64,000 nucleotides of DNA from Ascidiella aspersa. Its lineage: Eukaryota. The notes under the pieces were generated by a model. It did not search any database. It was not told where the DNA came from and saw nothing but the letters and a program-made list of their open reading frames with translations. Shown here piece after piece: positions 20,401-63,531 of this stretch; position 1 is the first letter of the stretch, and the number at the start of each line of letters is the position of its first letter. Position numbers and translations under genes: made by a program. Location of the stretch: NCBI GenBank assembly GCA_963924565.1, contig OZ004608.1, positions 16,306,001 to 16,370,000 on the forward strand. Direction: 5' to 3'.

Positions 20401-23400
20401 GTTGCGTGTAAACTCGGACGCAGCGAAGGTAAGTCATGCTATGAACGCCGGATTAGTGGCAACGCCAGCAAGTTTAGCTTGCACTGAAAAAGGTGGTTAG
20501 CCACTTCGGAGGCTGAGATCTTGCTACAAGGTTGTTTACAGAATGGAGATCGTTCGACGAAACATGCAGGCGCACGTAAACATAACGGGGATTGGGAGCA
20601 AGTTTGTCGAGCGCATCCCGCGGTTGCTCGTCCATCAGCCTTACAACGAGTCACATCAAACAACCATGAGGTAGGTTAGTGTCGTGTTTACCTCGCCTGG
20701 CGCCTCCACACGTCGACGTGGATGTTGCTGAACGCATCTCGGATCTTTTCCGTCGTGCTTTCCTCGACCCCTTCTTTTTCTTGCCTCCACTGATGGGATA
20801 GCTGGGTACGCTTCTCAACCAGCAGTTCCTGGAGTATTTTGAAGAGCCTTTCGCGGCCCTTTAGCGCCTGCGAAAATACACAATTATTAATTGGTATAAA
20901 TTTTAAACAAATCGCAAAATTTTGAAATTCAATTGTACCTTATTGAGTCCCAGACCGGGAATGTTAAAGGGAAGACTCAGCAAATTGTTGGTGATGGCAA
21001 GGAAGGCTTCGCGCAGTTCATTCCTCTTCTGAGTGTCACCCATTTGAAGACCCACGAGGACGCTGAGCGCGATGTTGAACGTCATCTTCTCAACGTGCTT
21101 TAGAATCTTCGGCTCCTCGCATTGCTTCAGGCCCTCCATCTGCGGATAGAAATCAGTTAAGAGAAAGTGCATCGTTCCGGAATACAGGTTATAATTATAC
21201 AAAAAACTGTCGCATACATTTAAAGTGATTGGTTAATAAGTGTCTTGCAACACAAGTGTCGCATAAGTAGGAAAAATAGTTCGAAAGAAATACATTTAAC
21301 TAAATAAGGGAAATTCTCCTACAAAGGTTTCACGAATTGTCACAGCGCTTTGTAATGTCAACTATAAATAAAACTATCATATCATATCGTAGTGGCAAAC
21401 CGGTTGCCCAAGATAATGAACCGTATTTATAATAACGCCCCTTGGTTTGTATTCATAAAGTACACCTCTGTTTGTCTTAATTTACAAATGCATCACATAA
21501 GCCAAGTTTCCCACGATTTTCAAGGACGAGACGACTTTAAATCGTCGTGTGACCCAAACTGTCAATTGGGCGTATTACAAATTTACCGATAAACATTTAA
21601 ATCTTGCGATGCTGATGCGTAGACGGAGTTCAACGATATACATATACACATCGTATGCACAAATCCTAGTTAGGCGATTTATGTTAGTTATTTAGAATTG
21701 CTGTTTATCTAATTTTAACCAATCACGCTGCTGTCGTAAAAATGTTTGAGGCCGATGTTTCTTGTCAATACGGCTTTAGTAATATAACGGCTTGGCGTAT
21801 AGAGCGGCGGGACAAGTTTTCGCCATTAAAGACACGTTGGCGAAATTTATATCATTTTTTTCTAAAATAGAAATTACATTAATTTCCTATATTTGGCGGT
21901 CAACTACGTTAGAGAAAAAACGACTGAAAACTTCGACATACACCGCATCCGTCACTCTGCGTTTTTAGAGGCTGTTAAGTTTTAATTGTCGCTTAATGGT
22001 AATGTGGTAATTTTCAGAAATGTTTTTTTTAACATTTACCGAGGCTTTTAAAAGTGACTTAATGGCGTTTAATCCTATCTGAAGCAAGAAAAGTGAATGT
22101 TGCCCGGTTTTACTTGTTAATCAAAATGGCCACGGTAGCGGGTAAGGAATAAATCCACAGCCAAGTTTCTTTCAGCACACCCCTCACAAGCTCACCATGT
22201 TCTGACATTCCTTGCGTATGACGGGCGCGTAGTTGTTGAGCGCCTCCCGCGTGAACGCTTTCGTGGCAATCTTGCGTCTGTGGTAGTGCATCTGACCAGT
22301 GCTGTTCGCCACCGTAAGCTCGCCGAGACTTTTCCGAATCGTGTAAGGCCAGTCGGTGGTCACCTTGTCATGTTCGCTGCTCAGCACCTATGGCAAAACA
22401 TGAGGTTGTTTGTCTTGCAGGAGACATTGTAAAACGGTTCGAGGAAAACAAATGGATTGCTAATAAAGTGTCTCCATTTACTTCACTCCATCTTGTATGC
22501 CTTACAATGTATATATTGATAACTTAAAATTAGTAAATACGATTGGGGACAAGTTTATAGTATAGGTATACATCTAAATATTTAGGTTGTGTATTTTGCA
22601 GCGTTTTCCTCAAAACCAAACGAGTTTACATCTCTAACGACTCCGAAAAATAAATAAAGGCTTACAGAAGCCTATACAAAGCGTAATAAATTTGAAAACC
22701 GTCGATATTACGGGGCCGCCCAGGCGCTCTGTGGGGCGGGGGCATTCGGGTTTGCAACAACAAAATATGTTAGTCATGTAATCTGGGATTTTCCGAGGCG
22801 AATTACCTCCTTGACGAAGTCGTGTCCCGAAACTTTCACCATTGGATCAAAAAGAACGTTGGTCTTGAACACTTTCCCGTACTTCTTGCGACGGTTGGAG
22901 TTAAATGCAGTGCCCTGAAAGGAATGTCAGGCGTTTAAAGGCTTACTTATAAATCAGACGTCACAAAACCGGTAAATTAAAATTTCTTTGTACCACTTGA
23001 AGTATAGGCAGTCGGTAAGGATGCATGCCTGACAAACCATCGCTAATAAAAACAAACAGAGCCAGGCGGCGCCACAGCATGACCCTTAACCTTGCAATTA
23101 CACTGATAAGTGGGAAAGGAACAAAGGACCGTAAAAGTTTAACGAGGGTCGCCGCAAAGGACACCAGCAGCAAAAGAAGCAGGAGCGTCGCTGTAACGCG
23201 CAGTTAAGGGAGTCGTTAAAAGGAGCAGCTTTGTTTTGCTAATTTGGTCCCGACCAGATTCGAAGACAGTTTCCATTGTGACGTAATCATGACGCATCGC
23301 GATCGCAAGTAGGGGGATGTGCGCGGTGAAACATGGATCGGTGTCGAGGGGACTCGTAAAGACCGGCGCAAGGTCGCGCTCGCGAGGTTGACCCCGACGA

Positions 23401-26400
23401 CGAGGTCACGGAAGCAAGGGGCGCGAGCGAGCAAACAAAAACAATCGGCGCTGCAGTCGCAGGTGCTGGGGCGAATAGATTGGACAAAACAACCGCAGCA
23501 GAGGTGAAGTGGGAACGTAACCGATAATGATGACGCAGCACTACGGACAGAAACCTCCATTGTGCGTGCTTACGTCAACAGCAGAGGGGTCACAAGTTTA
23601 ACGAGGGCAAGGCGAAACGTCTTAAATTTAAGCAGACAAATATATTTTTTAATTGTTGTAATTCAGAAATCGTTTTGTAAAAGGCAAGCCGTATTAAAAT
23701 GTCAACTCATTTTGATCAGACAGTTTCGTGTAGCACTTATAGCCGTGGTGGGAAATTCCTACAAACGCTTGAAACACTATGTAATCAGCAATCACGTCAA
23801 AACCGAAAATTCCCTTCAGCTAAAACGGACGCAGTTTGTCGCAGCCCGATTTGTCGATGACAATCAAGTCACGCAGCAAAGAGGCTAGGGTTGGGCTTAA
23901 AACGTTGCCTGTGCAGCCGCAGACCTCTAGAGAAACGTTTGACTATGACAACTGCAATAGTCGATCCCTCCCACGGGCGCAACGTGCAAACTCCCCCATC
24001 CAACGCTTCGATCGCCGAAATGTCGCCGTTCCGCCTTTCGAGGAGCGCGGGCTTCGAAGGCGCGCAGGACAAAACAAAGGGCGAGAACGGAAATATCATG
24101 CACATAATCCCATTCCATTTCCGCGTTGAGTAAATAGTAACTATGGGGTCAGGCGCCGGTCAAACAGGTGCCCGCGAAAGAGCGCGCGGCGCCGCCGAAT
24201 TCTGCTGGCGGCCGACGAATGAATCGATCATGATTTTCGCGTCCCGTGTTGTAACCCGGGCTGTAGTCGCTGTTCAACGCGCAGTGTGTGGAAGTTCGCG
24301 ACGGGGTTAGAGCGAGACACTTGATTTGCATTAAACGGATGAGTGTAAATCGCAATGAGGCCTTTTCGGAGTCTTGGCCGGTCAATGAACTCTATCGGAT
24401 GAGTTAGAAGCGCCCTTTAAATTTACTGCTATTAAATCGCTACCCGACAGTGCGCCTTTAAATCGCTCACGTGGTAGATAATAATTAATTGTTTATAATA
24501 GTTTAAATAAGTTTTAATTTGTTCAATCTGCAACGGGGAGAGTGCCAACTTTTGTGAAATGACCGTTTAGACAAAACCTAAGGCGAGGTTTCGAACCGGC
24601 AGAAAAATTCCGATCGGGTGAGAACGCGACCGCCGCTATCGCCACGTTTCTTTGTACGAGAGTGGACCGGAGCTGCCTTATGATGGGTTGGCTTTGTTCT
24701 GCGTCGAGTTGCGCCGCCGCAGAGACCTGCAATTAGCCGACCGTTCGGGTCACGACTCTGTACTTTTACCGCCGCGAGTCGCACTTGCTCGAAAGCTTAC
24801 CGAGAAACGGTGGCCTAATCCGCTCACACTTACACACTGACCCGTTCAACCACCGAATCAGATACAGGTCACGGGCATTCATATAAAAATCATTTTCTCC
24901 TGACGTACTATCCTAAATACGTCGTTTGTTTCATATTTTTGCCTCGCTAATCGAGTTTCTTTAAACGCTGACGTAGCTTTTTCTGGGTTTAGGTGGGCCA
25001 AATTTAGAACAAATATGCAAAGTGGTCAATGCTTGAAATACTTAAGAGTCCAACCAAAAAAGGAGAATATCTACTAACGAATACAGGAGAATATCTGCTT
25101 ACGAATATAGCGAATATTTGCTAATATGCGCAGTTCTGTCTCCAAAAGCAGCTACAATCTTAGAGTTACCGAGCGATATTTTACATAACACGGCCCATGA
25201 AAAGGAAACTGATTTACGTCAAAATCGCTCTTGGCTCTGAGGACCCGTTGTACATGTGCAACTGACGTCATTTGCGCCATGGAATACACGGGCGTGAAAG
25301 GCGCGCAACAATTGAAAGGTCTTTCAAACCGAGCGGTATGCTAATTCCGCCATGCCGATAGACAATGGTAATGACACTTGAGATTCCGACTACGCGCGTC
25401 ACCGGTCCCATGCATCACACTCTCGCTTCCACTGCCGGGAAATCGGCGCCGGGCGTCGTACACAGAACGTAGGACTAATTACGTTTCGTTGGCTCGTTCA
25501 TCTCGATTAAAGTGAAACTATTTAACTGGCGGTTTACGGCCAAAATCGATTGCTGTGATTTAAATACAACTGGCATTTCATAACAAAGCGCCCTCTAAGA
25601 GGATTGTATAAAACATTTTTTCAACCGAAAAGTATATTTGTTATCCACGCTTACCTCCATAAACCAAGCCCAGGTTTCGCCAAACATTGGGTATCCAAGA
25701 TCTCCAGGAGGAAGGGGAAGATGCGCCAGGGGTGATGACGGGTCCTCCGCCGAGCGCAAAATACGACGTCGCCACCAGATGCAGAGGAGTTGCCAGAGAA
25801 TGGTCAAAATCAGGACACCGGTGAGGCTCCACAACATCACAGAGAAGAACCAAGAAGCGGCCGCTTCGAGGAAGGAGGAGTCCTCCGGAAGATTTACCGA
25901 TCCCCCATTGACACCCAGTGGCGTCGAGTTGAGTAGAGCGTCAGAGGATGAGTCAGATGATGCCGTAATCTCCTGTTGCTGCTTCGAGATGATCACCGAC
26001 TTTTCAGTGGCTCCACTCGCCGACAGAAGATGCCATTCTTTGGAGTCGTTTTTCTCCTACAAAAACATTCGGTTTAGCATTTTGGGATTAATTTAATTCT
26101 GCCTTCTACTATTTCTTTAAGCTATTTTAAGGTGGATACTTAAGAGCCTTTAGTGTACACGCAATAAACGTGGTAAATGCTTCAAGCAGCAAACTGCTAA
26201 ACAACGTTTCAAGACAAAAGTTTTTTAAAAAATAGCTAGACATTTCCTTCACACAATAACTCATTGTTCCAGCACAATTGCTAATCAATAATCTCTCAAA
26301 AAACGCTTGAAGACGCCACATCAAACACATTTCTTTTCGAGCCATGGGCAAAAGTAACCACCAAATCAAGAGCTTGGTCACCCCATCACTCGAGATCAAC

Positions 26401-27569: not shown

Positions 27570-28628
27570 TGAACCCTGATTCACCCCGCCACCGGAACTG
27601 TACGCAATGTAATGTCAAACAATGTCGAAAAGCAAATAATTGATATCGGTAACAAGTCGTTTAACCCAATATGAACTCTCGAAGATTAAAATACGAATGC
27701 GCTTTGTTTGCTTTGAAAAAGTTACACTGTACTGGCGCTATCACAACTCGCTTGCTGGGATGGCTGGCGTGGCCTTTCTGTGACCTCGATTGCTGGTTTT
27801 TGCGCAAGGGACGCGCCCCACCTGACGGCGTCACGTGATCACAGATAAGGGTGGAGACAAGGCGCACTCGGCCTTCGTGTTATCAAAATGTACACAAACA
27901 GATTCCGCTGGATGTTCTGAAGGGAAAACAAATAGCAGAAAAAGTATGGACAAAAACACGAAACAAGGCTGAATGGCAATGGACACCAAGACTATATTGA
28001 GAAAAGAGAGAAGTGTAACCCAGCTGCTGTAACAAAATGAAGAAGCATCGTTATCAGGCGCGCCTCGGCCAACATCAGGTTCTAATCGGGATCGATCACC
28101 CGCAGAAAGCCGCGATTGGGGAATCTATCATCAATGCGAGCAAAGGTCGTCGGGCGACTAGTCGGGGCACGGCCTCACGCTGACCCCACCTTTGGCCGAC
28201 GCGTTTATTTAGTTTTCACTAAGCATCGCAAAGAATAATATTTAATAACTGGCTCGTGAAAATGTTTGCATTGCTGTTGTCGACGTCGGCGTTTTTTCGC
28301 AAATGCGCTATCGTCGACAAGAAGGAAACACGCATTAAGTTTCCCCTGCCGCCGCTGCGGTCGTTCGAGCTTCACTAGTAAACAAGCGGCTTTTTAACGG
28401 TAGGCAATGAACCATCGTTAACCCTGGATTGACCGCCGATGCTCGCGTTTTGTGATTGCGGTTTTGTTCGGTGCCAGAAAGTAAGATGGCGGAAGAAGCG
28501 AGAGCGTCGCGTTATTTTTGTGGCATTTCGCGGCGATCGAATGCGAGCGCGACCTGACCGGGTGAGATCGACGCAGCGAAAGACGAGCTGCGAAAGCAAC
28601 GAGGCAAAGTGGGGTGAAGGCGCGGTCA
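27570..28628. promoter_or_regulatory. Proximal DR5 RARE candidates 1-2 kb upstream of CYP26
   Basis: TGAACC-ctgat-TCACCC 27570-86; TGGCCT-ttctg-TGACCT 27770-86; TGAACC-atcgt-TAACCC-tggat-TGACCG 28408-35; 2-mismatch DR5s at 28170-86 and 28612-28. Confidence 0.6.
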
Positions 28629-42900: not shown

Positions 42901-45900
42901 AGTCTTTTCAGGCGGTAGCACTCCTATTTTTTAATTTCGTTGATCGTTTTAATTTTGCTGTGTTTCTGAATGTAATGATTCTGCTTGGCAGCAATCCACC
43001 TAATTTGAAGTGTCATCAACGCGCAGTCAAACAAATATAATACGAACTCAAATTAAAACCAGAAGAATTCAGTTTCGATTGTAGTTTAATTGTCACATAC
43101 ATTTAACTTATAAACACAATTTGTCCTTACGTTTACTTGGCATATGTCACTCCCCAATTGTTGGCGATTGGTGCAAACTTGTTGATTGAAAAGCATCGTC
43201 CGCCACATTTTACCTGAAAATAAAATTAATTAAATCTTTAAATATGGTTGGTCACCGATAAAGATCGCGGACGAACAATGCAAATTTGTGAGCAAAAAAT
43301 TTCTTAGGCCGATTTAAAAGAGTTTTGCAATAAATCTATCCACCAAATAAAAGCGTTAAAATGAGATTGAAAAAACTTTTTCCTATTTTTATTCTCCAGC
43401 GGTTTATAAATATACAATTTAGGTAATTAACTATAAAATAAAAAATCATAGTTAACATATTGTTACCCAATAGGTCGCAATTTAACGTGCGTCCACGATT
43501 CGACAAATACATGACCGATACCTAGTTTGCATTTTAGGGAAAAAAATTAAATCACTTGCTGTGATATTTTTAGTAAATCATTATTTGGCATAAAAAAAGT
43601 ATTTGCTTTACATTATCTTGCAAAATATAAACTTTTAAAAATAATATCATTACATAAGTAAAATGATATTTCACAAAACTATGGACAAAAAAATGCTTTT
43701 TACGAATTCATTCCTTAAAGAACACTAAAATGTTTAATAACTCACTTTATTGTGCTATCTATACCGTGATAATTCTTGATTTGTTGTTCTATCTTCGTTG
43801 CGCTTCCGACAGCGAATGATCAATTCCTCCGTCAGATCGTCTCTTATGTACGCTGAACCGTGGTAGGCAGTCACGAAAGCAGCATTGTTCGACTACTAAC
43901 CTCCAACTGACCCTAAGCTAACTCCAAAGCGCTGCGGATCAAAAGTACCTAATTGTTGTTCGACGAAACTGCAGAGATACCAACTCCGAATTTTCGGGAT
44001 GCCCCAAATGCTCGGGGTTAGTTTTGCGGTTTTGTTCATTTTTACGCGCAAGGTTTTCCGTCTGGCCCGCGGAGATTTGCATTGTCGGGCGCATATCCTA
44101 CGTGGACCGACAAAGCACGCGGACACCGGGCAAGCGTTAAGTTGCCGCAATCCGATTAAGCCGCCGTCGTTACCGCTACCGCGTTTGCTCTTATAATCCT
44201 TTTGGTGGCTTTTCGGCGCGACCACCAACACGACAAATACCGGCTTAACATCAATGCAACAAGTTTTTGTTGTTGTCAAGTTGCGTCGCCGGTTGTTTAG
44301 TAGCTACATACCGCAGCAACGTCGCGGCGGGACCATCGGTTTAGTGCAACTCGCAGACTATGACCTACCCATTGCTGTCACAGTTGTCGGGCGATGATTT
44401 AGCGACATATACGTCCAGTCGTCCATTGCTGTGACGCCGTTGGTTTGCTCGCAACGACCCGCCTTCGAAGCTAATTTTACAAGGCTATCCAAATCGTGTC
44501 AAATAGCCACGCAGGCTGAACGATCACACAGCGGCTTAACTCCACTGGTGCTGATCAGCATGTGAAACAGGAAAGATTTTTGTTAAACATGATAAATTCT
44601 GCTACAACAAAACTGTATGCCGGTCCCAAAAGGCGACGCCACATCGTTGTTGCATGAATATATGCGGAAGGTTGCCGATGTTTTGCTGTGTTAGAATACA
44701 TATCTTTATCGCGCAGAACGAACGGTAAACAAATACCAGTGTCAACATTAGTCACTCAGCATAGCGGGCATGAACCTGCAAGGCAACATTTGCACTCTAA
44801 ATGACACTCTTCAAAACGTAGGATTAAGAAATAAGCCGTAAAACCTAAAGGGTGTGCTTATAGGACACCCATACTTGGAGGGTGGGACATTTATTCCTGG
44901 ACTGTTATACAAAATAGTCACTGTTATCGTCCGATTACTCAACTGTTTAAAATTTTGTTAAAAAAGTCAGTTGGTGTGCCGGCAATCGATGCGCTGTTAC
45001 AGTCGGTGGGCAAATTTCGCCGGTTCAGGTTCATTTGTGAGATCATGAAACGCATTTCCGACATGTGGCAAATTTAAATGGCTTAAAGAGTCACCTGGAT
45101 GACCGCGAGACGTGCCAGGGAGAAAGTGGTGGTGACACCCAACACGCCGCCAAACACGACCTGCAAATGACGAACCAAAAAACTTTTTAACGACTTCAAA
45201 GCCGTGGGGGGCATCCTCGGGATTGTTGAGACAAGAATCTGGGGTCTGTGGCGTGGGAACAGGGAGATAATCCGCTTTAGGCACCCCTTGATCGCCGATA
45301 CCCAGTGTACAGCCGGATAAATACGACGCTGTAATGGCGCTGCGCCTTTTCAGCTATACACTAAACGGCAACGCGGCTCTTGAATCAATCCGATTTAGGG
45401 GATTGAAATTTTAGTTTCCTTGTTTTGGCGATGCGGCGGGTGGTCCTTCCCCTTCTTTTATATTAAGCTCAATTATGGGCGCGATGTTGCGCAATTTGCG
45501 CCTGTAATGTAGTTAGCGATCGTAGGCGCGAACAAGAAGTCGTACAACTATTGCTGTCGAAGCTCAAAATGCAGTGCACAGTTGCCGATTCTCGGGGCAC
45601 ATTAGACACGCTACGGTGGACAGCTTGATTGCGCGCGCCCATACCACTGAACGAAAGGCAACAGATGCGCGGGAGATAATTATTGTAATCGGCTCGGTGC
45701 ACTTTTTACCCCAAAGTTGTTTTCGTCGAAGTTCGGGCGGCCCCCGACTGATCTGTTGGAAAACAACACAAAAAAGGCAACCGGCCGCGTAAGCCAGCCT
45801 ATTCTTCAAAACAGCACCTCTCCAGTGCGGGATGCCTGGAAGGGTCGGGAACCCTAATGAATCCGAAAGGGTAAGTTTAGTCGTACTAAAAAAACAAACG

Positions 45901-48762: not shown

Positions 48763-48884
48763 TGAACTTTCGTCGAACTTTGCGGCAAGGACGGAAAACC
48801 ATATCCGCGCGGTTAAGCGCGAGTTCACGTGCTTACCTGCCTTAAGCCGTCGGGTCATCAAAAGGTCAGCGCCAGTAATTGGAC
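48763..48884. promoter_or_regulatory. Compound RARE module A (three DR5)
   Basis: TGAACT-ttcgt-CGAACT 48763-79; GGTTAA-gcgcg-AGTTCA 48811-27 overlapping CACGTG; perfect GGGTCA-tcaaa-AGGTCA 48852-68; CAGTAATTGGAC 48873-84. Confidence 0.8.
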
Positions 48885-49379
48885 TCGAAGTCGGCGTTGG
48901 ATGCAAATTTCGACTTTTGTAGGCAAAACACGCTGCACACGATTCTACATAAAATCATAGGTAACTTTAGGAATTCTTTAAACTCTAAAAACGTGAAACT
49001 TTAGGCCGCCCATTGTAAAGAGAAGCCACTTAAAAATCGTTGCAATTCCTAGTTTTTGAGTGAACAATATTATTAATTTCCAAAACACCTGAGTCTTTTT
49101 CATGCGTTGTTTCGACCTTATTTACCATTGATTTCTAACTTTTCGCATCTGATTTTACTTGGACCACCCAACCGGCTACTTAGTTTATTCCTTATTCTTT
49201 GCTTGAATGTGTACGTTTGGCACCTGCACCATTTTTTTTTCGCCCGCAGTGTTGGAAAAGATTGCGGGGATTCGGAAGTTAAATTTAGAAAAGGCTCAAA
49301 TCATCAAATTATCCCAACTATACGTCAAGCCACTTTGCTGGCCCCTTGTTTAAAGTCCCTTTTTTGGTTTTGTCTAAAT

Positions 49380-49892
49380 TAGGGCTATTTTAGGACGATT
49401 TGTCCCCTTTTCTCAAGAAAAGTGAATGGTCCTTCGAGGACGCTCAAAAATGCCCAAATGTCCTCTTTTTTCGCTTCGAGTTGGTTGCTTATACTTTTAA
49501 AAAGACTGTTAGGCGAGACGTTGTATTGTTTTCCAAAACATTACTGTAACCACGAATACATGTTGAATTGCTGGTTTAAAAATGTTTTTCAACGAATCGC
49601 CCTACCAGCCCTACCGAACCTAACATGTAAAAAGGCCCAATAATAAAGCAAAGGTGTGTGCTTATTTACTTTAAAACGCAGGATTTTAAATCGTTACTTA
49701 TAACTCTCTTCGTAGCAGCCAATAGCAGAACCGTCGCCCTCGAAACAAATAGATCAATATTTGCGCTCGAGTCGACCAGCAACACCAAATTTCCTATTAA
49801 AAATTTCCTACTCAAACGTAGCAATTCTACCTTCGTTTAACTTGCCGGAAAAACATGTCCTCTTTTTGGGTGCTAAAAATATGGTAGCCCTA
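49380..49892. mobile_element. hAT-like MITE (TAGGGCTA termini)
   Basis: TAGGGCTA...TAGCCCTA; near-perfect 8-bp TSD GTCTAAAT / GTGTAAAT; internal TGTCCY repeats. Confidence 0.65.
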
Positions 49893-50941
49893 GTGTAAAT
49901 GAAATTTACATCCTTTCGATCTGTCTTATTTTAACTTTATTAGGCACACGACATGCCGTTAACCTAGGCTCAATATTTATTACGTAACAACGAAATATAA
50001 GAAATACGTATAAAAGGTAACTGCACGATTTAATATACGCTAAATAATTACAAATAAATATGTAAATGCACAAAAGGGTCTATAAAAGGTACGATGAATT
50101 GTTTCTGTCTTCCACAGGCGTTCAATGACGACAATACAAAAATGTTGCACTCGTTCCATGAACAAACTGAAGACTTTTTTCAATTAAACAAGCCATATAA
50201 AACAGTTTACAACGTATTATGTCCGAAACAGGTAAATGCTGTTTAACATTTGGCGAAAAAGTTTCATAAACTATATAGGAAAGAAAGGACATCCCAGTTA
50301 GTAAAAGATATATTTACAAAAAAGTATTTGTACAAAATAATTTGCTTAAGATTAGTTTAATATATACGATTAGACTGAATAACATTACATTAGTACGAGG
50401 ATTTTCATTTTAGGGTAGAAAAATGTCTTCGATGTAGAAGTTGTTATGGGTTGTCCAGCATGTACGCAGGAATTCTGCAGAGGCAAACCTTTGTTGCTGA
50501 TTAAGAGTGATTCGGCATGTAAATTGCGGAAAATTGTTTGCTTCGTCTAAAGAGGGAAAACTAGAATGAGCTCAATCGGCGTTCCTTCGATCAAGACTAA
50601 TCCGCCTAAAAACTCGTTCATCATCTCCCCCCAAACAATGTTGATCACTGAAAGCATATGGAATCTGTTTCCAGCAACAAACGAAGGGCAATTAGTCATA
50701 ATTTTGCGCGCCGTTGCACCGGGGCAAACAGGTTTCAGGCAATTGAACTAAGCTTTGGATACAGATGCAACCAACGCTATACTGCAAGACAAATCGTCCC
50801 ACTCGTAGTCAAAATCCAAATTTCTAAGGCGGGTTTTTTTTTGCGTAACTAATCTTGGTTTGGTTCATATACCGCCACGTACAATAAACACTTTGTTGCA
50901 AAGAGGTTGTTAAGTTTACGTGACCTGAAGTCCTACTAGAC

Positions 50942-52399
50942 CAGCCTTTCTTAACCTGGGGTAAATTTACCCCTGGGGGTAAATTTCCTCACTTTAGGGG
51001 GTAAATTAGCTATAAATCAAAATATCCACATCAGCTGACGAGACAAAAAATAGTGCCAGCTGTAGGTATTGGTAGCATAGTTTCCTGAACTGCTTTTTTG
51101 AAGCTAGCCTGGCCTAACCTATTGATTTTTTATCGCCTTGTGTCGACAACGTTATGCTTCGCTAATTGATCATTTTTTCAGTTTCTTGACATTATCCTTA
51201 TCTTTCAGTTACTTCATTAATACGTCATTTACTGTTTGAATAAATCAGGTTCTTCGGCAGTCACGGCATAGATTAAGGCAGTGGTCTCCAACCTGTGGGT
51301 CTCGACCCCAAGTGAGGTCGCCTAACATTTTTGTGGGGTCGCCATAACTCACCATATTCGTAATGTTTTAGTACGATTTGTGTATTTAGTTTTCTTTACA
51401 ATGAGGTATAAAAATTGCTGTTTTTAGCTCTTAAAGACCTGCTATATCAGTTAACATACATATGACAAAATTTGTGTTTTTTGATTTAGCGTATCAAATG
51501 TCGCACTTTTTCTAAAACCACACCAAGTTACATGTACAAGTGTTTCAAATGTAAACAGTAGACGGAGATGTTTAAAATCGTCCCTCATTTGTAACATCAT
51601 AACAAATGCTGTTGATTTCTAGTAAAACATCTGCGTTTTCTGAAGTTGCATTCCACTGGCCAAATTGGAAAGCATATTCACTTAGAAACACAAACAGGCG
51701 AAGAGGCTTATCGCTAAAAACATTTTTTACTTGTCATTATGAATACATTCCCCGGCGAAGTAGGTGCCCGTTCTGCTGCATTCTATAGCACTTGTTTTAA
51801 CATTGCCTATAATTGTCACCAAAATGGGGTCGCAATGTAAATTCTAATTACATCTTATTTAAATTGGGGTCGCTTATTTCAAAGATTGGAGACCACTGGA
51901 GAACGTGTCTGCGAGCAGTTTTGAAAGTTCCGATACACTTTTTGACATTTTAGTGCTGGTTATACATGTGATTGCCTAATTTTGTCACTGGGTACGGCTT
52001 AACTGGCCAAGTTAGTTTATTGTTGATCTTTTTAGTCCAATGATTAAGGCTTTAAAGAACTCATTGACTGATTATTATAGTCTGTAAAAGTAACAAAAAA
52101 TGTAATCTTAAAAATGGCGTGTCCCAAAAGAAGAGAAAGTACCAGAAAAATTATTTTAATTTTAGATTTACATATTTTATTGAGAATGGTCTTTAAGTTC
52201 CTCAGTGTGTCTCGAACTGGAATGTTTTGACAACAACTCGTTGCCAAACGCAAGGGAACCCGTCGCATTGATTATACCTGATGTAATTTGTTACTTTCCT
52301 TTTTCTAATAGATGAGAACTATTTTATATAATGGGGGGTAAATCTGATATTTATCTTTGTTAAAGGGGTAAAACATACAAAAAAGGTTAAGAACCCCTG
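50942..52399. mobile_element. hAT/Charlie-like non-autonomous element
   Basis: Termini CAGCCTTTCTTAACCT / AGGTTAAGAACCCCTG; perfect 8-bp TSD TACTAGAC at 50934-41 and 52400-07; GGGGTAAA sub-terminal repeats. Confidence 0.85.
51279..51898. mobile_element. hAT MITE nested in 50942-52399
   Basis: Perfect 13-bp TIR CAGTGGTCTCCAA / TTGGAGACCACTG, GGGGTCGC sub-terminal motifs; TSD not preserved. Confidence 0.72.
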
Positions 52400-55300
52400 T
52401 ACTAGACAGATAGTTTTGGTAAATTTTTTTTATTTAATTCCCTGCATAAAGTTTTGTTTATGCATCTTAGTATATTCAGGTTTATCAACTAATTGTCCAT
52501 TAAAATAAATGCAAGTGGAAGGACAAACTATGGCTATCAGTCAGCCTGTTTTACGGCAAAATTCATAGACAGGATTCCAACCTGTTTCCTAAACCTACAA
52601 CAGATTCTCTGTTGTTATTAACGGGTCGGTACTAATGTTTGACAAAATTCAGATTTACGTATTTTGAATAATCTTGGACGTTAAACACTAATCATGTTTC
52701 CTATAATTTTAAAGTATTTTCGGTTCTATTCTGCGAAATTTTCATTTAGACAAATAATCAGGAAATGTCATGGGGTCAACCTAATTATGAACCAGTTATA
52801 GTTTACTAAAAGAGGTCATTAGAGCGCTTTGAACGGCACGAATGGCCAATTATGCTGATTCAGTGCGAAATACCAGACACACCATGTTTAAACTTAATTA
52901 GCATAAGATCATTGCGTCAGAATCACGAGACATATATTTCGTCATGTTTCTGCATAAAGGCGAATGAAACAGGACAAGGTCGATTGTCTCTCGTGTATAG
53001 GCGATTGTTCGAAATCGTATCGCTTTTTTACACGTCGAAGAAATAACATTTAAAAAAGCTCAACGCAGGCATCAACTTATGTTTTAAACAAATAAGCTGC
53101 AAATCCGGCACACTGATATAAAGTGCACAATTTGCTATATATTTTCAATATTATATTGTTCTTCCATTGTAAGGCATAAACACTGAAGGAAATTGTCTGT
53201 ATTTAGATTTTCGACTTGAAATTTATACTTGTTGGTATTAGGAAAGTTGGAAGATATGATGCGACTAAATGTTCCCCACCAAATAGGGTAGATTCAGGAT
53301 TAACGTAAAGGACATGAACATTTTCAGAGATGACAAATTTACGTCGCAACTTTACGTCATAAAACAAAGTAACCTACCGTGTCCAGACGGACTCATGTGC
53401 AAATATGTATCTAAAAGCGTATACAAACCCTCATAAGACCAAGAATATATTTATATTAGACGAGAATGCGTTAAAGAATTTTTATAATTGCTTTATTTAT
53501 TTTGGAAAACCGAACTTTGCGCAAAATAATGGCATTTAGTTTATGTTTTTCCAAACGAGTTTGGGTGGCTGTTGAGCCCCAAAGAGGACCAAGTCATTGT
53601 CGATGCAATAACACATTCACACTGTAAAGTTATTGGAGATTCGGTCAAAACGGCAACATTTACTGCATAATTCGCTTTATTATATCGTGATCTTAACATT
53701 ATGATATTATAGATAACCCGGCTTTAGATGTTGTTACTTCATAGGTCTTAGTTTCCATCCATATGATGTCATCATGAAGTTGAAAGATCGGACAGGAAAA
53801 GTTGTGGAGGTATAGGAAAAAGTTTTTTAAATCTCAAATGTTTGTTGACTATTGCCGGCAAAATATTTGTGTGCTTTTATTCAAAATCCGAAATGTTTAA
53901 GCGGCACTAGATTAAATCTCTGTTTGTATTCTATACAAATGCCGATAATAAAGAGAACAACCCCAAATAAGAAATAAGCAAACAAACACTTGGTTGTTGA
54001 GTTGACAAAAAGTGGGAAATTCCACGAGTTGATGTTGCAGAAGGAGTCACTCCGAGTCCGAGTTCATTGTTTGTAAGCTATACAGGGCTGATAAGCCGAT
54101 AAGTTTTTCAGTCCTTGGTGTAGGTCAAAACATGTCAATTCGAATATGCTACAATGGCAAACTGGAGGACATCACCAACCAAGCAATTTGTAACGAACCT
54201 TGTTGCGTTCATTTTGATATCCATCTGTTTATGAGAAGATGCGAAACAACAAATGAATCATCGGGAACACACGTTAGGAAATTGTTTAGTGTATATTTCG
54301 AACAAATATTTTAGAAACACATATTTCGAACAAATATCTAGATTCTAGAAACACACACTCACATTTGTAGATAGTGATTTCGCTAACGAGCAATTTATTT
54401 TCGTTTAAAATTGACTTTTTGTTTTTAACTACAGTTTATAATAGCGTAGGGAAGTATAGCTATATAGACCTAAGCTGGTAATACGTTTAGTAATTATGGT
54501 CAAATGTCAAGAGTTTGCCAGGTCATGTTCTTCACGACTCCGTACAATTATTTGATAAAAAACGTTAAAAATCGCGAAACCAAGATATAACTAGAAGATC
54601 TCTTCAGATAATGCGAAATGTTTAGTTTAAATAAAATTGAAAACAAACATTTGTGGAGTCAGACGCCTTAGCCTGATCGAGTTTTACAGGTGCAGCTTTT
54701 CACAATGATTTAAAAAAATTTGAGTTACATTAGTTAGTTCCGACTGTACGTCGTACAGTCGACTAACTAAATGTTTTAGAGGAATTTTGACTTAAACTTG
54801 AAATGTATATACTTTTTGACGTTTTAATCGTTTTTATGTTGAGAAGTTTTGCTTTTAATTCGCTTACACTAGAAAACGCTGCGCTGTATCCCGAACCATG
54901 ATTTGTTACACAGCGAAGACTGCTGATAAATATATACCAGCGGTCCATCGTTCACATTATATCTGTGGCTAAAATTAAGATTCATGACTTTCTCTGTAAT
55001 GAGATATTGTTAATTTTTTAAATAAACAGAACATTCAGCACGCATATATTTTATTGTGGCGTATGGTTGATACCAGGTGCGTCGCGGGCAAAAGGAAAAA
55101 ATAATTTTAATATATAAACATATATTTTTTTACTTTAATTTTCGTCTTAGCAATTTAGGAGAAATAAACCTACTGGCCAAAAAAGCAAAAAATGTTAAGC
55201 ACTGCTCTAGTGTAATATAGGCCAAAATACATGTTTGCTGCTCGTTTTTAACAAGTCGAATATAACGACCAGTAGTTATAGCCAGATCCAGTTATTGCCC

Positions 55301-55829
55301 CTTATTTGTTGATGATACTTCGTGAAGTGATTTGAAATAAACTACCTATATGCAGTTCAGTTAAGTATTTAAAATACTAAAACTCTTTTTGTGTGGCTAA
55401 TGTGTTATAAGAACCACTGCTTCTCCTTGAATTTAATGTTTTGACGACAGCGATTGCAGATATGAGCTGACTGATAGAAGTTATTTTTGTTCGTATCGAG
55501 TTTGAAATGTCGTATTATTTGTAACCAGTAAGTTATATGAATTATATTCTCGCTGACCAATTGTCTTCCTAGAAACCAAAAAACTATCACCTACATGTAA
55601 AAAAACATTGGATTTCATAAAATAAAATTTACGTAGTGAATGTAGCCTAAAACGGAAGAACTCCACCGACCACGGTTCAACAAACGTTTAAACATTGACC
55701 TCATAAACCAATATAGTTTCTCTGGGATTGCTTTAACCAGCCTTGAATTGAGATACAAGTAAGCGAACAAATATATAAAAAGTCCACCATTGTTTGCTAA
55801 ATAAAAGCCGAAGAAGTTATTTACCGAGC

Positions 55830-55990
55830 TTCGTTGAACTACGGTAACCGTGCGGTTCATCGTAAGTTCACGTGCGCGCGCAGCTCGTACCTAAGGTAGG
55901 TTCGGGTCAATCGAAGGTCACCGGCAGTAATTGGACACGGAGCCGGGATTAAGCCTGACATTTTCAAAGGACTGGCCGGTCAAAAGTTCA
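55830..55990. promoter_or_regulatory. Compound RARE module B (two perfect DR5 plus DR2)
   Basis: GGTTCA-tcgta-AGTTCA 55854-70 overlapping CACGTG; GGGTCA-atcga-AGGTCA 55904-20; CAGTAATTGGAC 55925-36; CGGTCA-aa-AGTTCA 55977-90. Confidence 0.82.
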
Positions 55991-57736
55991 ACGAAAAACA
56001 ACCTCCTTCGCCACGGAACCTTACATGAAAGACAATGATAAGTGGCCTTAATCAGAAGTAGGTGCGTTCTGTAAATCACTACAAACAAAAAAACGCTTAG
56101 CTCACGTAGTTTTGGGTGCAACAGTAAATTTGGCAGCTTGCGTAAGTAAAATGCTGACGGGAAGAGGGCGGGTTTAGAAGAAGCCATGGTATCCAATCAA
56201 CACCACAAAATATGGTTATAATCAACGACACAAATTACACAATTTTATATGACCTGATATTGTCATTTATTGTGGATAACTTTTTGGAGCTGATTCCAAA
56301 AATGTAAGCACGTTTTTTCTATCGTCGATCGTTTGCTGGCAGTAAGTAGATTTGGCCTAAACGGGTTATGCGTTTAGCTAACCAGCTAATAATGCACATA
56401 CACAACATGTAGAACATTAAAATTTATTAATCTTCCAAGATTATTTATATGTATAGGGCGATTATTTTTTTACTTTAGAAATAGGAAATTTTGACCTATT
56501 GGAATACATTGATTTAATCAAAGCGTTGTTGTATGAATTAGCCTACTGCAATGATGTCTTGGCGTCGTCAGTCACTTGTTTATAAATACTGACGAGTGAC
56601 GACCGGTGGAACACAAATCAATTATTGTCGGGTTTATGCAAAACTCTTTTGAAATGCCAAGTTAGTATTTTTGGTACATTAAAAAGACAAACAACTTTTA
56701 AAATGCCACAAGAAGGGCAAGACGCTGGTAATTTAGGACATTGCTGAGTAAACATTTTGATTGAATTGCAAGTAAATAGATGGCAAAATGAAATATATGT
56801 CGGTTCTGCAGTGATATTTCATAAATTACACAGTGCTTTTTTGGTTTACTACACTATAAATGCCATTATATCATTCTTTATTCTAGTTTCTTTATGTGCA
56901 TTATGTATGCCTAACTTTTTTGACCACCCCTGCTTATTACACAGCCTACTGCGATGTCAGAAAAAAAAAGCTTGCTCTTTTTACCAAGAAAATAGGACGT
57001 TTCGGATTAAATGGGAAGAGCAGCATTTTTAAAATGAAATGGACAAAACTATGCTCTATTTGCTTTAGATTTTACACTTGTTAAATTGCATGATCTATCT
57101 ACGCCCTACGGGTCGGGCTCCCTTTTAAAATCGACCGTTTAAATTTGGCTAGGATGCTAACAAAGGTTAAGAACCACTGGTCCATGCCCTTGTAGTTCTT
57201 CTTAACCACAACGGACAGCAATAGTTTAAATTGAAACAAAAATCCGCACTCGATATACATATAAACAAACCTTCCCCTTTTGCAAGAAACTGTTTCTGCC
57301 AACAGCGATTTATTTTCATGGTAAACAAACAAAACGCAAAAGAATGTGTCAGCGATATGGCAGTTCAAAGGTTATACAGCACATAGAACGCCTGGATATT
57401 TTAAATAGATTTTGGATTTAGAATATCGAATTTTCTTATGTGTAGTATTTATGCTAAATATCGAAAAATACTTGGCGTATCATATGGCCAAAACAAATAG
57501 GTAATAACTACAAAGCATAATTGTTCGTTTTTAGAAACAGATAACGTCGAGTTGGACAAAACAAAAACTTTTGTATGATGTTTGTTTATTTTCGTTTTGT
57601 TGGTATTCTTGATCGAAACTGCTGAGAGAAAGCGCACACTTTCAAATTTCAATTTTCGCGGTCACAGTAGGGGCATTATTTTTAAACCTCATTTAAGTCA
57701 TCTTCAGAAGATGTTTTACCAAATGTTCGTCGTATC

Positions 57737-60700
57737 CTATTTCGGCTTTTTTGAGACAGAGCCGGTCTTCGCGTCGCCGGGCGAAAACTTGGTGAACAGC
57801 AGCGACGGAATGCGAACCTTTGTCTGGTCAGAGTTGGAGAGGGTGCGGGAAACGGGGGTGAGGGGTCTAGCCCCAGTTTCGGTCCCGGCGGAGGCGCTCC
57901 TGTTCTGCCCGGCGATTCTCAGCAGTTTGCCGCCGGCAGCGACGGCCGCCTCTCCCCTTCTTGCAAGGAGAGCAGCGTTACTAAGATTGGCCTTCCTGGA
58001 ATTGTTATCTCCCGAGGAGGAGTTGTTGGTAGGGAGGAAGACGACACTCGCCTCACTTTGCGGTTTTCCTCCAGTCGCCGGCCGCGAAATGGTCACCGTG
58101 TGCTTTCTGTTGGTGGACAGGTTTGCTGAACTTCCTATGTTGTCAAGCTTGATAACCGCACGGGACGAGGGTCCGGGCAATATGCTTGTTGCTGTGCCGA
58201 TTGAACCACCACCGGAAGGAGATGGGGTAACCTGAAACGATAGATATCTTTAACAACAGCATTTAACAATATTCACCGCTATTTTTTTAATGATCTTCTA
58301 GTTTTTTAAATTTTTTACTCTTTTATTTGTTGTTTTGTAATTTGCTTTCCTAAAACCACAAACAATGCAACTTGATTTTCGGTATACGGTTTATACGTCA
58401 TTTTTTTAAATCTTTTAACATTTTAGCACACTCTACTGAACAAAGGGTAGCAACAAAAATTGACAATGTGGTACAACTGAATTAAAACAAAATGTGTTAC
58501 AACTAAATTACAATAAAATGTGTTACAACTAAATTACAATAAAATGTGTTACAACTAAATTAAAACAAAATGTGGTACAACTAAATTAAAACAAAATGGG
58601 GTACAACTAAACAAAATGTGGTACAACTAAATTAAAACAAAATGTGGTACAACTAAATAAAACAAAATGGGGTACAACAGAATTAAACAAGCTAAATCAA
58701 AATTCATTCACTTTCGTGTTTAGTCGCTTTCCGTCGGATTGAAAAGCGGATCCCAAAACCAGGTCAACGAGGGGAGTGGGTGTGGAGGACGAACTGGCAA
58801 CTTTGGTGCCAGGGCCAAGGCTAGAACCGATCTTATTCGAGGTGACGAACCTCACGGAAGCGCTCGGTTGGTTCGTCATATTTTTCCTGCCGCCAGGCGC
58901 CAGGACAAGCGGAATGGTGCGCGGTTTGCTGCCCGAGGATAATTGTTGCGAACTGAAAGCGGTGGGTCGGTTGGTGTAGGAGATTGGCAGGGAGCCCTTC
59001 TTGGAGGGCACAGCGGTTCCGGACGACAGGATCCCGGTAAGTCCGGATGACGTCAAGATGTACCTTGTAAATAAAAACGAAAAATGTACACTATGCAGTA
59101 TGTCTTAAAAAATGCCCGAATAAGGTGCACGTGTTAACTTTACTTTTCCCTTAATTATGGCAGCATGCTTGCCATTTATGTAGTTTAGTTGGGGCTGTAC
59201 TTATGTTACCCGGTGTTAGCCTTTATATTGCCTATTTATTTTTAGGTTACCTATGCTTATAATTAACAACATGTTATTGATTCATTCGAATTAAGGATGC
59301 TTTCATGTTAATAATAATTTACCCTAAGTAGTATAATATTTAACTCTGTGCACTTGTATGTCACAAGCTGAGTCATCACATCACTGGTGGCTTCATGAAG
59401 ATAAGTTTACAGCACGGACGAAAAAAAAGCCAACAAAAAGTATACTCAATATGGTATTGCTCAGCGAAAATAATTTGATCAAATAGAGGCAGCACAAGCG
59501 AAAACAGAAGCCTATGGAATTCTAACATACCCCAAATCCCTAAGATAGAAAATCTAAAAAGAAGTGATCCAGAAAAATAACAAACCCATCAAGATCAAAA
59601 CTCACGGGTCGGTGCATATTGATTGCGACACGGTGTGCGGCACGCACGACAACATAGTATGAGCAAAATTGTTCATTGTGCAATGAACTTTTCACAATGT
59701 CACAAATGCATATGCTCCACATTATCATTGAACGGGCGACGACCGAAAAGGAATTCCAACCGGCGTTGATGTACAATTTAACACCTCACCTCACAACCGA
59801 TGGTTTCGTTTTGACACCAGACGTCGATCCTGTAGCCGCGTTCTGATTGGTCGCCGCCAACGTCGCGGTTCGTTTCTGCTTGTAAACTCTCGAGCGCCCC
59901 TTTGCGGCGTTCGAGGCGACGCCTCTTGAGCCGATTGTGTCCAAGCTGTGGCGACGTGCGTTGGCGGCCAGACCTGAAAAGCGATACATCCAGATTTTCA
60001 GTTACGGGCAAAATGCCGTGTAAAGCTCACAAAGTGATAAACATGCAGGGATTAACAACCAGTCAAAGACGAAGAGGCTCGTTTACCCTCGATCTTACTG
60101 TGTTAAACGCAAAGAGCCAAATTATACATACTAGTATAAACCTGTGTTTCTCGACCACCTCTGCCTAGAAAAGGTTCAGTGAAAATTTGGTTGCCAAAAT
60201 ATTTGCTGCTATAGAAAGATAAATAAGATTAGTCGGCCGACAAATAGTTATGTAAAACAAAGTAATGTAAAAAAGAAAAAAAAGCAATGTTTACGACCTT
60301 GGCAATAGCAGGGCCGCCAGTCTAACAACGAAAATACAATGGCAGGTTAGCTTCGCTTGCCAGAAAAAAAGTGACTGTTAACTACTTTTTGACATGAAAT
60401 TTTCGTTGGCTAACGTGACTTTAGAAGTGAATGAATAATAGCATTCTACGCGGGTTCGTTTTTATGCAAGACACATCATTCCAACCGAAATCAGTTAGAA
60501 AAGTGTCTACAAAGCATAGAAAAGGCATGTTAAACGCAAAGAGTCAAATTATACATAATAGTATAAACTTTTTTGATCGCCGCTCTAACAACGAAAATAC
60601 GATGGCTTGGTAGTTTCGCTTACCAGAATAAAAAGTGACTGTTAACTACTTTTCTGGTATAACAGTGTCGTTGGCTAATGTGACTTTAGAAGTGACTAAT

Positions 60701-63531
60701 TAATACCATTCTACGCTGTTTCTTTTTTATGCCAGACACATCATTCTAACCGAAATCAGTTGGAAAAGTGTGCGAAGCATAGAAAAGGCACGTCGGCACT
60801 TACGAGATATGAAAAATCACACAGAATATCATGGTGTCAGAATACTAAAAAAGAAAAATCCACTGACAATATAAAACGAGGCTTCACCTTGCAGCTTTTT
60901 GCCGGCGGCGGAAGTGTTGAACTCGGGTGACGGCGACCTGCCGTCGTTGCCGGAGTCCAGCGAACTGGTCAGCTGTTCCAAAATGGCGGTGGCCTGCTGT
61001 GTTTCGCGGTCCTCCCGTCTGCTCCTGGAGGCGAGGAAGGAACGCGATTGGTCGACGCTGAAAGAGTGGGAGCGCGCGAAACCAGAGGTGGGGAGCGGAT
61101 GGCTGGCGGGAGCAGGTGTCGTTTTGTGTGAAGCAAGCAGTTTGGTCACTGTTGACGATGATTGGCAGGTTAAGGTTGATTTGGGGTATATGCAGGTTTT
61201 TTTTAAGGTTTGGTTTGGGTGACCGCTAAGTAGTAAGTTTGTGGAAGAGTTTTACAAAAAACAACGACACCCATACGCCGAGCTAGCTGCAAAACATTGG
61301 TAAAGCATTTTGATGCAGCGATGTCAGTTAGTTAAGTTTTTGAGGTTACAAACCACAGGCAAAAGATAATATTTCATCAAACATTTACGATTCGAAGCAA
61401 AATAGGACACCTCATTAAACCAAAATACAACAATAAATACTACTGAAAATAAATAGCTGTTCGCATTTGCTTCGTCGCATAAACTTGTTTTATATAATAT
61501 TTAAAAAGCTACAATAATTATATGTAGTAATGGATTAGAAAACTGCACCATACACCAAACGCTTATAAATAGTAGTTCTACTGCGGATTTTACTATCAGA
61601 TGAGATACTTGGGGAGTAAATATAAAGTAATAAGTTAACATTCTGACAAACCAGCTGGCGAATACATCGATGGTGTAGAAATGCTGAATGCGGACGAAGA
61701 TGTGTTGATATCACCTGTGGTCAACACGAAAGTGGTAATAATGGAAAGCGTTTGTTAAGCCACGAAATATCACTAACATAAAGTTATTACTTTTTTATAG
61801 CAGCCTAAGTAAATTGTAGATCAAACGCAATAAATTCTAATATAACTGAGTTCATCGAAGGGCAAGTTATATAATTTCTCTGGTAGTTTAATTACTATAA
61901 AATACTAACATTGGTATAATTTTTTGGCGAAAATTGCTATCGATTAACAACGCCATTAGTATAACCTGGACGTTGGCGTTAAACTTGACAAAGTCGGAAG
62001 TCCACTAATATAAATAGCCCCCGAGAGATGTGTTTTGATGTTAACTACTCCCTTAATGTAAGTAGGCTACAGCATTTCTTCAAAAAGAATAAACAACGTT
62101 GTAAGACCATAAAAGCCTTTTACCCAAGTTTACTGTTAAGGAAGATTCCATATTAACTTTCGGTGGTAAGCTCGTGGAAACGCTTGCGGTCACTTCCGGT
62201 TCGGTTGTCGGTTTCGGAAATCTGCACAAACCACAAATGTCATTTTAAGCTTGCCAAGCCAGGGAAATCAGTTAGGAGAATGTAACAAATAACGCCGATA
62301 CCCGTGCCGCTTTGAAAAATCAGTTCACTTTGCTCGGGGCTACAAAACCTTAATGCAATTCTATTCTTGCGACAAGTTAAAATTGAAAATATAAATAAGT
62401 AACTATTTTTTAGTTTTCCTTAACTATCTCAATTTTTTTCCGCTGTTTTTACGCCAAAAACACTACCTAACTCTAAATCGGGGTGGTCTAAGCTAAAAAA
62501 AGCTTTTCAGAGAAAATCACAATTATCTCCATTTTTCGAGTTATGTGTAAATCTTTTTTGTATGCCCAATACGCCACGCCGGATATTAAAACTTCTGCAA
62601 AGAATAGTGTGACCCCAGAAGATTTTCAGCCATGACGTTATAGCTATGAAAACAAAGAAATCACTATTCAATTAGCAAACGGGCTGTTTTTTCTTTCATA
62701 GTGTACCTGTTTAATGTATTTGTAATAAATTTTGTCTTTTTATTTTAGAAGAGTGATGATAATGTATAGATTGTTAAGTGCATATTTTTGAGATCCAGTG
62801 ACCTAAATCGCATGTTAAATAATATGTTACAGATAATATTAAAACAAAGGCGATACCCGATTAATAATATCACGACTCGTAATTTAGTAGTATCGGTGCT
62901 GATCCAATATCAAATATATTTAGGCAGTTAAGCCTTTTACAATCTAACGTGGAGTTACATTAATAAGATAAATTTCATCCACGTTAAATTATAAATTTCT
63001 CAGAAAATATTACAGTAAGATCAATGGTAAAAGGGAAAAAAAAACATTCGGCCTCGTAAGCTGAAAAGCATTACCACTGCAGTTCAATACGATCGATTTT
63101 GCCAACTAGAAGATAGCAATGACGTGTCGTAATTTAGTATTGGACGGCCGCTCGTTTTGCCAAAACAACGCTTATCGGTATCGAATTCAAACAACAAGAC
63201 GTCTCTCCTAAAGTCACGCCGCTTACCGGTACAGCATGCAGATTTTTACGCACCTGAGGTTGGAAGAAGGCGACATAACGGCAGTAGCCGGGAGCTGCTG
63301 GGCGCCCACATCCTCCGCCTTGTCGCTGTCACTTCCCAAGATGGCTGCGATCGCGTCTTCCGTCTGCTTCTCGGTGGGCTGAAGCAACTGCGACTTGCGT
63401 TTGGAGAGGGCCGACGACAGCTGGGCGTTGGGGTCCTGTGTGTGGAAGAGAATTCGTGCGTCGGAATGCGCTTCGTGTAAGCATGATGTCGTGCCCAGGC
63501 GCTCATACGATAGTGAGTTTTTTGGCACGAC
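57737..63531 (-). CDS. 3' exons of an unidentified, largely low-complexity Ser/Thr/Ala/Lys-rich protein (probably nuclear); gene continues beyond the window
   Basis: Phase-consistent exons 63531-63254 (or 63227), 62221-62124, 61714-61652, 61148-60888, 59973-59790, 59063-58712, 58231-57737 (stop TAG after ...SVSKKPK). GC-rich exons in AT-rich introns; no domain recognised. Confidence 0.75.
58464..58688. repeat. Intronic minisatellite, about 26 bp x 9
   Basis: Unit aaaatgtggtacaactaaattaaaac with small variants, head-to-tail without spacers. Confidence 0.9.
60101..60790. repeat. Intronic tandem duplication (A-x-B, A'-B')
   Basis: A 60101-141 matches 60528-568 (tgttaaacgcaaagag.caaattatacata.tagtataaac); B 60313-527 matches 60578-790 (tctaacaacgaaaatac...aagcatagaaaaggca). 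Confidence 0.8.
62354..62392. repeat. Dispersed intronic repeat, second copy at 63942-63980
   Basis: tgca(a/g)ttctattcttg(c/t)ga(c/t)aagttaaaattgaaaatat in two introns of the same gene. Confidence 0.6.

Follow-up and report, generated by a model that had tools for sequence, protein, structure and literature searches.

Paralogous DR5-bearing modules upstream of the single CYP26 gene of Ascidiella aspersa are candidate retinoic acid feedback enhancers

A 64,000-nucleotide stretch of the Ascidiella aspersa genome (GenBank assembly GCA_963924565.1, contig OZ004608.1, positions 16,306,001 to 16,370,000; hereafter the window) carries the only CYP26 gene of this genome and, in the ~30 kb of intergenic DNA that separate the CYP26 5' end from the 3' end of a neighbouring gene, two short modules of related sequence, here called A and B. 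Each module contains direct repeats of a nuclear-receptor half-site separated by 5 bp (DR5). We propose that A and B are a paralogous pair of distal enhancers, responsive to RAR/RXR, that would mediate feedback of retinoic acid (RA) on CYP26, and we assign this interpretation a probability of about 0.6. The modules are homologous to each other and unique in the genome, their conservation is biased towards the sites, and DR5s are enriched in the DNA beside CYP26.

Two collinear modules and their sites

Comparison of the window with itself by blastn aligned the two modules collinearly and on the same strand, with a score of 48.3 bits (E=1.2e-5). As a control, 30 versions of the window were prepared in which 1-kb blocks were reshuffled under a first-order model that keeps local composition, and these yielded best off-diagonal scores of 32.6-41.1 bits. 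Because the score of the module pair exceeds every shuffle maximum, the alignment is significant even given the search across all position pairs in 64 kb. A repeat finder resolved two ungapped blocks within the alignment, one of 31 positions with 25 identical (48802-48832 versus 55845-55875) and one of 45 positions with 36 identical (48850-48894 versus 55902-55946). The DNA between these blocks measures 17 nt in A and 26 nt in B as the result of an indel, and the upstream part of A is ~18 nt longer than that of B.

An earlier note on this DNA, made by reading the sequence, had listed the shared blocks, and all of them are present at their positions in both modules with the same order and orientation. 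An upstream 11-mer, TTCGT(C/T)GAACT (TTCGTCGAACT in A and TTCGTTGAACT in B), matches at 10 of 11 positions. It is followed by CG(C/T)GCGGTT(A/C)A-n5-AGTTCACGTGC, by a TAAG lying between the first and last site blocks, and by TCGGGTCA-n5-AGGTCA-n4-CAGTAATTGGAC. The gaps of 24 and 33 bp given for the DNA between the two DR5s were also confirmed. A block written as ACGG.AACC is found in this form in B (ACGGTAACC), whereas A carries one additional A (ACGGAAAACC). The similarity continues for 10 bp beyond the 3' ends noted earlier, to 48894 and 55946. Thus, collinear modules 7.05 kb apart contain the same sites with the same n5 and n4 spacings.

Since the similarity also runs through bases outside the sites, the alignment supports the derivation of both blocks from one ancestral sequence. 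The duplication appears to be old because the flanks and spacers have been randomised, so that the common descent and the age proposed in the earlier note are both supported. The flanks were said to lack similarity, and a k-mer diagonal analysis agrees, as none of the diagonals around offset 7,043-7,052 is enriched. A larger segmental duplication was rejected on the same result.

Coordinates of all features are collected in Table 1. When compared with a consensus of two direct (A/G)G(G/T)TCA half-sites exactly 5 bp apart, the DR5s beginning at 48852, 55854 and 55904 are perfect and the one beginning at 48811 departs by a single mismatch. The start-to-start distances of the two plus-strand DR5s are 41 bp in A and 50 bp in B, and this 9-bp difference (n=2) falls short of a full helical turn. 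In both modules, the first DR5 is overlapped by an E-box and the second is followed by an invariant 12-mer, which holds a TAATTG core and has CCAAT on its reverse strand. We take TAATTG to be a generic homeodomain core and CCAATTA to be a poor NF-Y site. The upstream TTCGTCGAACT block of the earlier note proves to be a portion of an additional, minus-strand DR5 in A, of which B retains just one half-site (55835-55840). A DR2-like element located just 3' of B has no counterpart in A. Both modules have a GC content of 0.55 and a CpG observed/expected ratio of 1.6-1.7, compared with a GC content of 0.3-0.45 in the flanks, and A lies at the 3' edge of a GC-richer stretch of ~500 bp.

Table 1. Coordinates of features in the window (position 1 is the first nucleotide of the stretch)
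Feature	Position	Strand	Description
CYP26 exons	19847-25996	-	open reading frame (ORF) 19847-20311, I-helix region; ORF 25595-25996, membrane anchor and PPG motif
Three DR5s near CYP26 5' end	27570-27786	-	at most one mismatch each, within 220 bp
Module A	48763-48894	+	proximal copy, ~22 kb upstream of CYP26 5' end; GC-rich and CpG-rich
Module A, minus-strand DR5	48763-48779	-	AGTTCG-acgaa-AGTTCA, one mismatch
Module A, DR5-1	48811-48827	+	GGTTAA-gcgcg-AGTTCA, one mismatch to RGKTCA
Module A, E-box	48826-48831		palindromic CACGTG overlapping DR5-1 3' half-site; identical in module B
Module A, DR5-2	48852-48868	+	GGGTCA-tcaaa-AGGTCA, perfect consensus
Module A, 12-mer	48873-48884	+	CAGTAATTGGAC, 4 bp past DR5-2; identical in module B
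Multi-copy terminal inverted repeat element	50936-52405		~1.47 kb, 22-nt inverted repeats at ends, between the modules
Module B	55824-55946	+	distal copy, ~29 kb upstream of CYP26; narrow GC/CpG island surrounded by AT-rich sequence
Module B, DR5-1	55854-55870	+	GGTTCA-tcgta-AGTTCA, perfect; CACGTG at 55869-55874
Module B, DR5-2	55904-55920	+	GGGTCA-atcga-AGGTCA, perfect; then n4 and 12-mer at 55925-55936
DR2-like element	55977-55990	+	CGGTCA-aa-AGTTCA, one mismatch, just 3' of module B
Neighbouring gene, last exon and 3' untranslated region	57300-58231	-	expressed, Ser-rich; stranded RNA reads and GT-AG intron 58232-58711

Conservation, copy number and the DR5 landscape

To describe how the two copies differ, aligned positions were classed by reference to the standard half-site of nuclear receptors, (A/G)G(G/T)TCA. 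Half-site positions are identical between the modules in 23 of 24 cases, whereas the 5-bp DR5 spacers match at only 3 of 10 positions (Fisher p=1.6e-4), and the remaining positions within the blocks match at 35 of 42. The lengths n5 and n4 are exact in both copies, whereas indels have altered the DNA that separates the blocks. The comparison supports the contention of the earlier note that half-sites are retained while spacer bases diverge, and CACGTG and the 12-mer are identical in both copies. Such a pattern is expected of two receptor sites maintained by selection. Judged from these two copies, the paralogous comparison appears to separate kept bases from drifted ones, such that the pair can be read as its own footprint. 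The invariant CACGTG and the invariant 12-mer probably bind co-factors on which tissue competence depends.

Searches for further copies covered the genome at 308.6 Mb. Module A used as a BLAST query matches only itself. The 20-nt pattern AGGTCA-n4-CAGTAATTGG has three exact matches, two of which are the modules; in the third exact match, as in the matches with one mismatch, the flanks are unrelated and a DR5 is absent. The aligned cores also served to build a sequence-only covariance model, which scores the two modules at 90-104 bits. No other sequence in the genome scores better than E=3.6 with this model, and a search of the window with filters off adds no third copy. Pattern scans of metagenomes for homologues of the modules gave either no matches or only GC-rich bacterial chance matches.

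The earlier note had also raised the prospect of finding the same combination of sites near other RA targets. This was not borne out by the genome-wide search, in which the arrangement DR5-n4-12-mer is private to the two modules. The 12-mer itself is not over-represented, with 30 genome copies compared with 35 for a reversed control. A DR5 joined to CACGTG is found only in B and at one unrelated site. At that site, G000:C7:98660-98680, both half-sites of the DR5 run into CACGTG (AGGTCACGTGGGGGTCACGTG) in a sequence unrelated to the modules.

DR5s occur at the CYP26 locus beyond chance. Between 27 and 57.5 kb of the window there are 16 DR5s with at most one mismatch, compared with 1.23±1.2 (maximum 5) in 200 shuffles, and the other spacings in this interval (DR0-4 and DR6-9) yield 0-4 elements each. 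Of the four strict (RGKTSA) DR5s in the window, the modules hold three, and the fourth is close to the CYP26 5' end. Strict (RGKTCA) DR5s number 1,231 genome-wide, or ~4 per Mb. This density predicts ~0.03 strict DR5 in 7.2 kb, where three are present. Many of the genome-wide strict matches share one string, GGTTCAGCTCCGGTTCA, and therefore stem from a dispersed repeat, so that genome-wide counts overstate the number of independent sites. The three DR5s at 27570-27786 fall within the same DR5-rich landscape and are candidate promoter-proximal RA response elements (RAREs), which may be likened in position to the R1 and R2 elements of vertebrates.

Predicted feedback on CYP26 and competing explanations

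We hypothesize that one cis-regulatory element upstream of the single CYP26 gene underwent an old, local duplication in the same orientation. The two DR5-type RAREs of each copy would bind RAR/RXR heterodimers, and when RA rises, the receptors on these DR5s would raise CYP26 transcription and thereby close a negative feedback loop. The two copies, together with the DR5s scattered in the region, would act as partly redundant distal enhancers in a multi-RARE feedback landscape. The CACGTG over one half-site and the 12-mer 4 bp past DR5-2 would recruit the co-factors that confer tissue competence. What this scheme infers is that the receptors bind the DR5s, that the modules act as enhancers, that CYP26 is their target, and which co-factors take part. 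The presence of two separate modules at one locus with matching site content suggests a shadow, or redundant, enhancer pair.

A more demanding version of this proposal holds that selection has kept the pair as an obligate composite switch, in which a fusion of an RAR/RXR site with CACGTG operates together with a second RAR/RXR site placed 4 bp from the homeodomain-type 12-mer. We consider this version doubtful. If it were true, RA induction of CYP26 would be gated by basic helix-loop-helix (bHLH) and homeodomain factors, and the duplication would provide robustness or a graded dose response. The locus would then offer a rare natural shadow-enhancer pair that is traceable to duplication and readable as its own footprint.

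Several observations weigh against the feedback-enhancer interpretation. The modules were spotted through their DR5s, and half-site conservation is thus partly a matter of ascertainment. Constraint is deduced from a single paralogous comparison of two sequences in one genome. Module B lies ~1.4 kb from the 3' end of an expressed neighbour and 29 kb from CYP26. In addition, the combined grammar is restricted to this locus and so cannot be called a general RA-target code.

The small sample also leaves room for a neutral relic, in which ~125 bp arose by local copying, perhaps through templated repair, and have since been decaying with DR5s that were inherited rather than selected. Identity at in-block positions outside the half-sites is high, as for a moderately young copy, and neither transcription nor any other activity was observed in the reads over B. 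However, mismatches are distributed non-uniformly, with spacers and half-sites differing as described above; both inter-block spacers were remodelled by indels while n5 and n4 stayed exact; and the modules sit within a 13-fold enrichment of DR5s that is specific to the 5-bp spacing. We therefore regard neutral decay as quite unlikely. It is unlikely, too, that the modules are real enhancers serving another target, either the minus-strand neighbour or a gene farther away, or another nuclear receptor than RAR/RXR. The proximity of B to the neighbour and the fact that RGKTCA half-sites are common to many nuclear receptors speak for such assignments, but the enrichment is limited to the 5-bp spacing, which is the classical RAR/RXR geometry, and it reaches the CYP26 5' end at 27570-27786. 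Furthermore, CYP26 is the archetype of an RA-induced gene, also in Ciona (PMC3458022), whereas the neighbour has no recognisable RA-linked domain.

Alternatively, the modules could be promoters or genes for a paralogous pair of small or non-coding RNAs, or they could be short coding exons, given that ORFs cover A on both strands and that the lengths of the two inter-copy indels (9 and 18 nt) are divisible by three. Yet all six frames of B hold stops, and every difference in the shared frame alters the amino acid. A pair of coding exons was rejected because of these stops and the lack of silent differences; Pfam searches of the ORFs near the modules gave no matches. With respect to RNA, no Rfam match was obtained at E<=1 between 44 and 60 kb, fold z-scores are only -0.5 to -1.2 for both strands of both copies, the predicted structures differ between the copies, and B has zero depth in RNA sequencing (RNA-seq) data. 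An RNA gene was rejected on these grounds, and we consider this family of explanations very improbable. Transposons are present close by (50936-52405, plus pieces in many copies at 54.9-55.3 kb and at 56.3-56.7 kb), which could suggest that the modules derive from a transposable element or another dispersed repeat. This is extremely improbable, as genome BLAST, pattern and profile searches return two modules only and other pattern matches have unrelated flanks. At the sensitivity of BLAST, a pattern with one mismatch allowed and the covariance model, a repeat family is refuted, and the modules are not pieces of a high-copy repeat, an outcome named in the earlier note as fatal to its proposal.

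The proposed feedback-enhancer pair resembles shadow enhancers in that the same transcription-factor input is predicted for two separate modules of one locus. In most of the shadow enhancers described so far, the shared sites are not accompanied by sequence that can be aligned. Unlike these, the ascidian pair is visibly homologous, and here the redundancy is a prediction.

Negative feedback of RA through CYP26 has been described in vertebrates, amphioxus and Ciona. In Ciona, RA strongly up-regulates cyp26, and expression of the gene is lost with DEAB (4-diethylaminobenzaldehyde) (PMC3458022). Vertebrate CYP26A1 is driven by DR5 RAREs, including the promoter DR5 'R1' (AGTTCA-n5-AGTTCA; PMC5247814) in addition to RAREs located upstream, and a distal enhancer of mouse Cyp26a1 contains two cooperating RAREs (PMC13738024). 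The ascidian locus is similar in having several DR5s upstream of the gene for the RA-degrading enzyme, two RAREs per enhancer and the same expected logic, whereby ligand-activated RAR/RXR induces the clearance of its own ligand. In contrast, no vertebrate Cyp26a1 sequence can be aligned with the ascidian modules. These distal modules are recognisable as paralogues, a relationship that has not been reported among the vertebrate elements, and their function is predicted.

In the CYP26 cluster of amphioxus, 12 of 13 conserved DR5s are bound by RAR/RXR in vitro (PMC5247814). Like the ascidian locus, this cluster spreads many DR5s over tens of kb, with the same half-site consensus and a purine-rich spacer end. 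However, the amphioxus genes themselves are duplicated, with DR5s among three paralogues, whereas here the regulatory block alone is duplicated beside one gene. The amphioxus elements were also validated by electrophoretic mobility shift assay and conservation in three species (PMC5247814), while the ascidian DR5s are known from sequence alone.

Among ascidians, an RA-responsive epidermal enhancer of Ciona Hox1 (Kanda et al. 2009, as described in PMC3227721 and PMC3458022) is the only working RARE found in the accessible parts of the open literature. As these citing papers present it, this enhancer indicates that ascidian RAR signalling acts directly through DNA elements, as would be the case here, although it is a single element of another gene in another species. 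The open literature yielded no description of DR5 elements at an ascidian CYP26 gene; for ascidians, it reports just the response of the gene to RA. The earlier note did not recognise the module as described, and this holds for the ascidian elements and their combination of sites, which we did not find described, but not for multi-DR5 feedback on CYP26, which is known in amphioxus and vertebrates (PMC5247814, PMC13738024).

The locus provides short, testable candidates, namely four DR5s together with an E-box and a 12-mer that are each present twice. Sea-squirt embryos are easily electroporated, making the prediction cheap to test. If confirmed, the tunicate branch would join the evidence for direct DR5 wiring of RA-to-CYP26 feedback across chordates, and the pair would be an example of enhancer redundancy born by duplication. 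Nothing currently accepted would be overturned.

Genes, transcripts and repeats around the modules

CYP26 lies on the minus strand at ~19.8-26 kb of the window, placing A 22 kb and B 29 kb upstream. A search for relatives made with one exon gave matches to Phallusia mammillata 'cytochrome P450 26B1' (53%) and to a Ciona savignyi P450 (56%). The best named relatives of an FLVCR-like ORF are from Clavelina lepadiformis (52%) and Ciona intestinalis (44%).

The intergenic region is bounded on the side away from CYP26 by the neighbouring gene (57300-59104, minus strand), which is expressed, encodes a Ser/Thr/Pro-rich C-terminus and gave no match in either Pfam or the atlas. A 26-bp minisatellite at 58439-58683 sits in its last intron (58232-58711). 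In the RNA reads, which come from another individual, a 5-nt deletion is present at 57473 (21/23 reads), and a 6-nt deletion that preserves the reading frame is probable at 58222-58227. RNA-seq depth was assessed with one run from the same species over 6 kb containing B, and in these data, depth on B is zero while the neighbour is covered from 57300 upward. None of the contigs assembled from other sequencing runs extends over B. Short multi-copy sequences at 54900-55300 and 56300-56700 attract partial reads and contigs with many loose ends, both from the RNA run and from runs of other organisms. This signal is derived from repeats and is not evidence of local transcription.

The element at 50936-52405 has >90 genome copies with 83-99% identity and is probably a young non-autonomous DNA transposon. 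Because it inserted between the modules, their original spacing was smaller, at most ~5.6 kb.

Other internal repeats are also present in the window. An AT-rich pair on the same strand (43563-43673 and 50307-50407) scores 49.7 bits with 69% identity over 111 nt. Its offset of 6,744 is not collinear with that of the modules, and the similarity may be compositional or that of a low-copy repeat. The strongest internal repeat of the window is a tandem duplication at 60315-60793, which has a unit of ~263 bp, 85% identity and a score of 213 bits.

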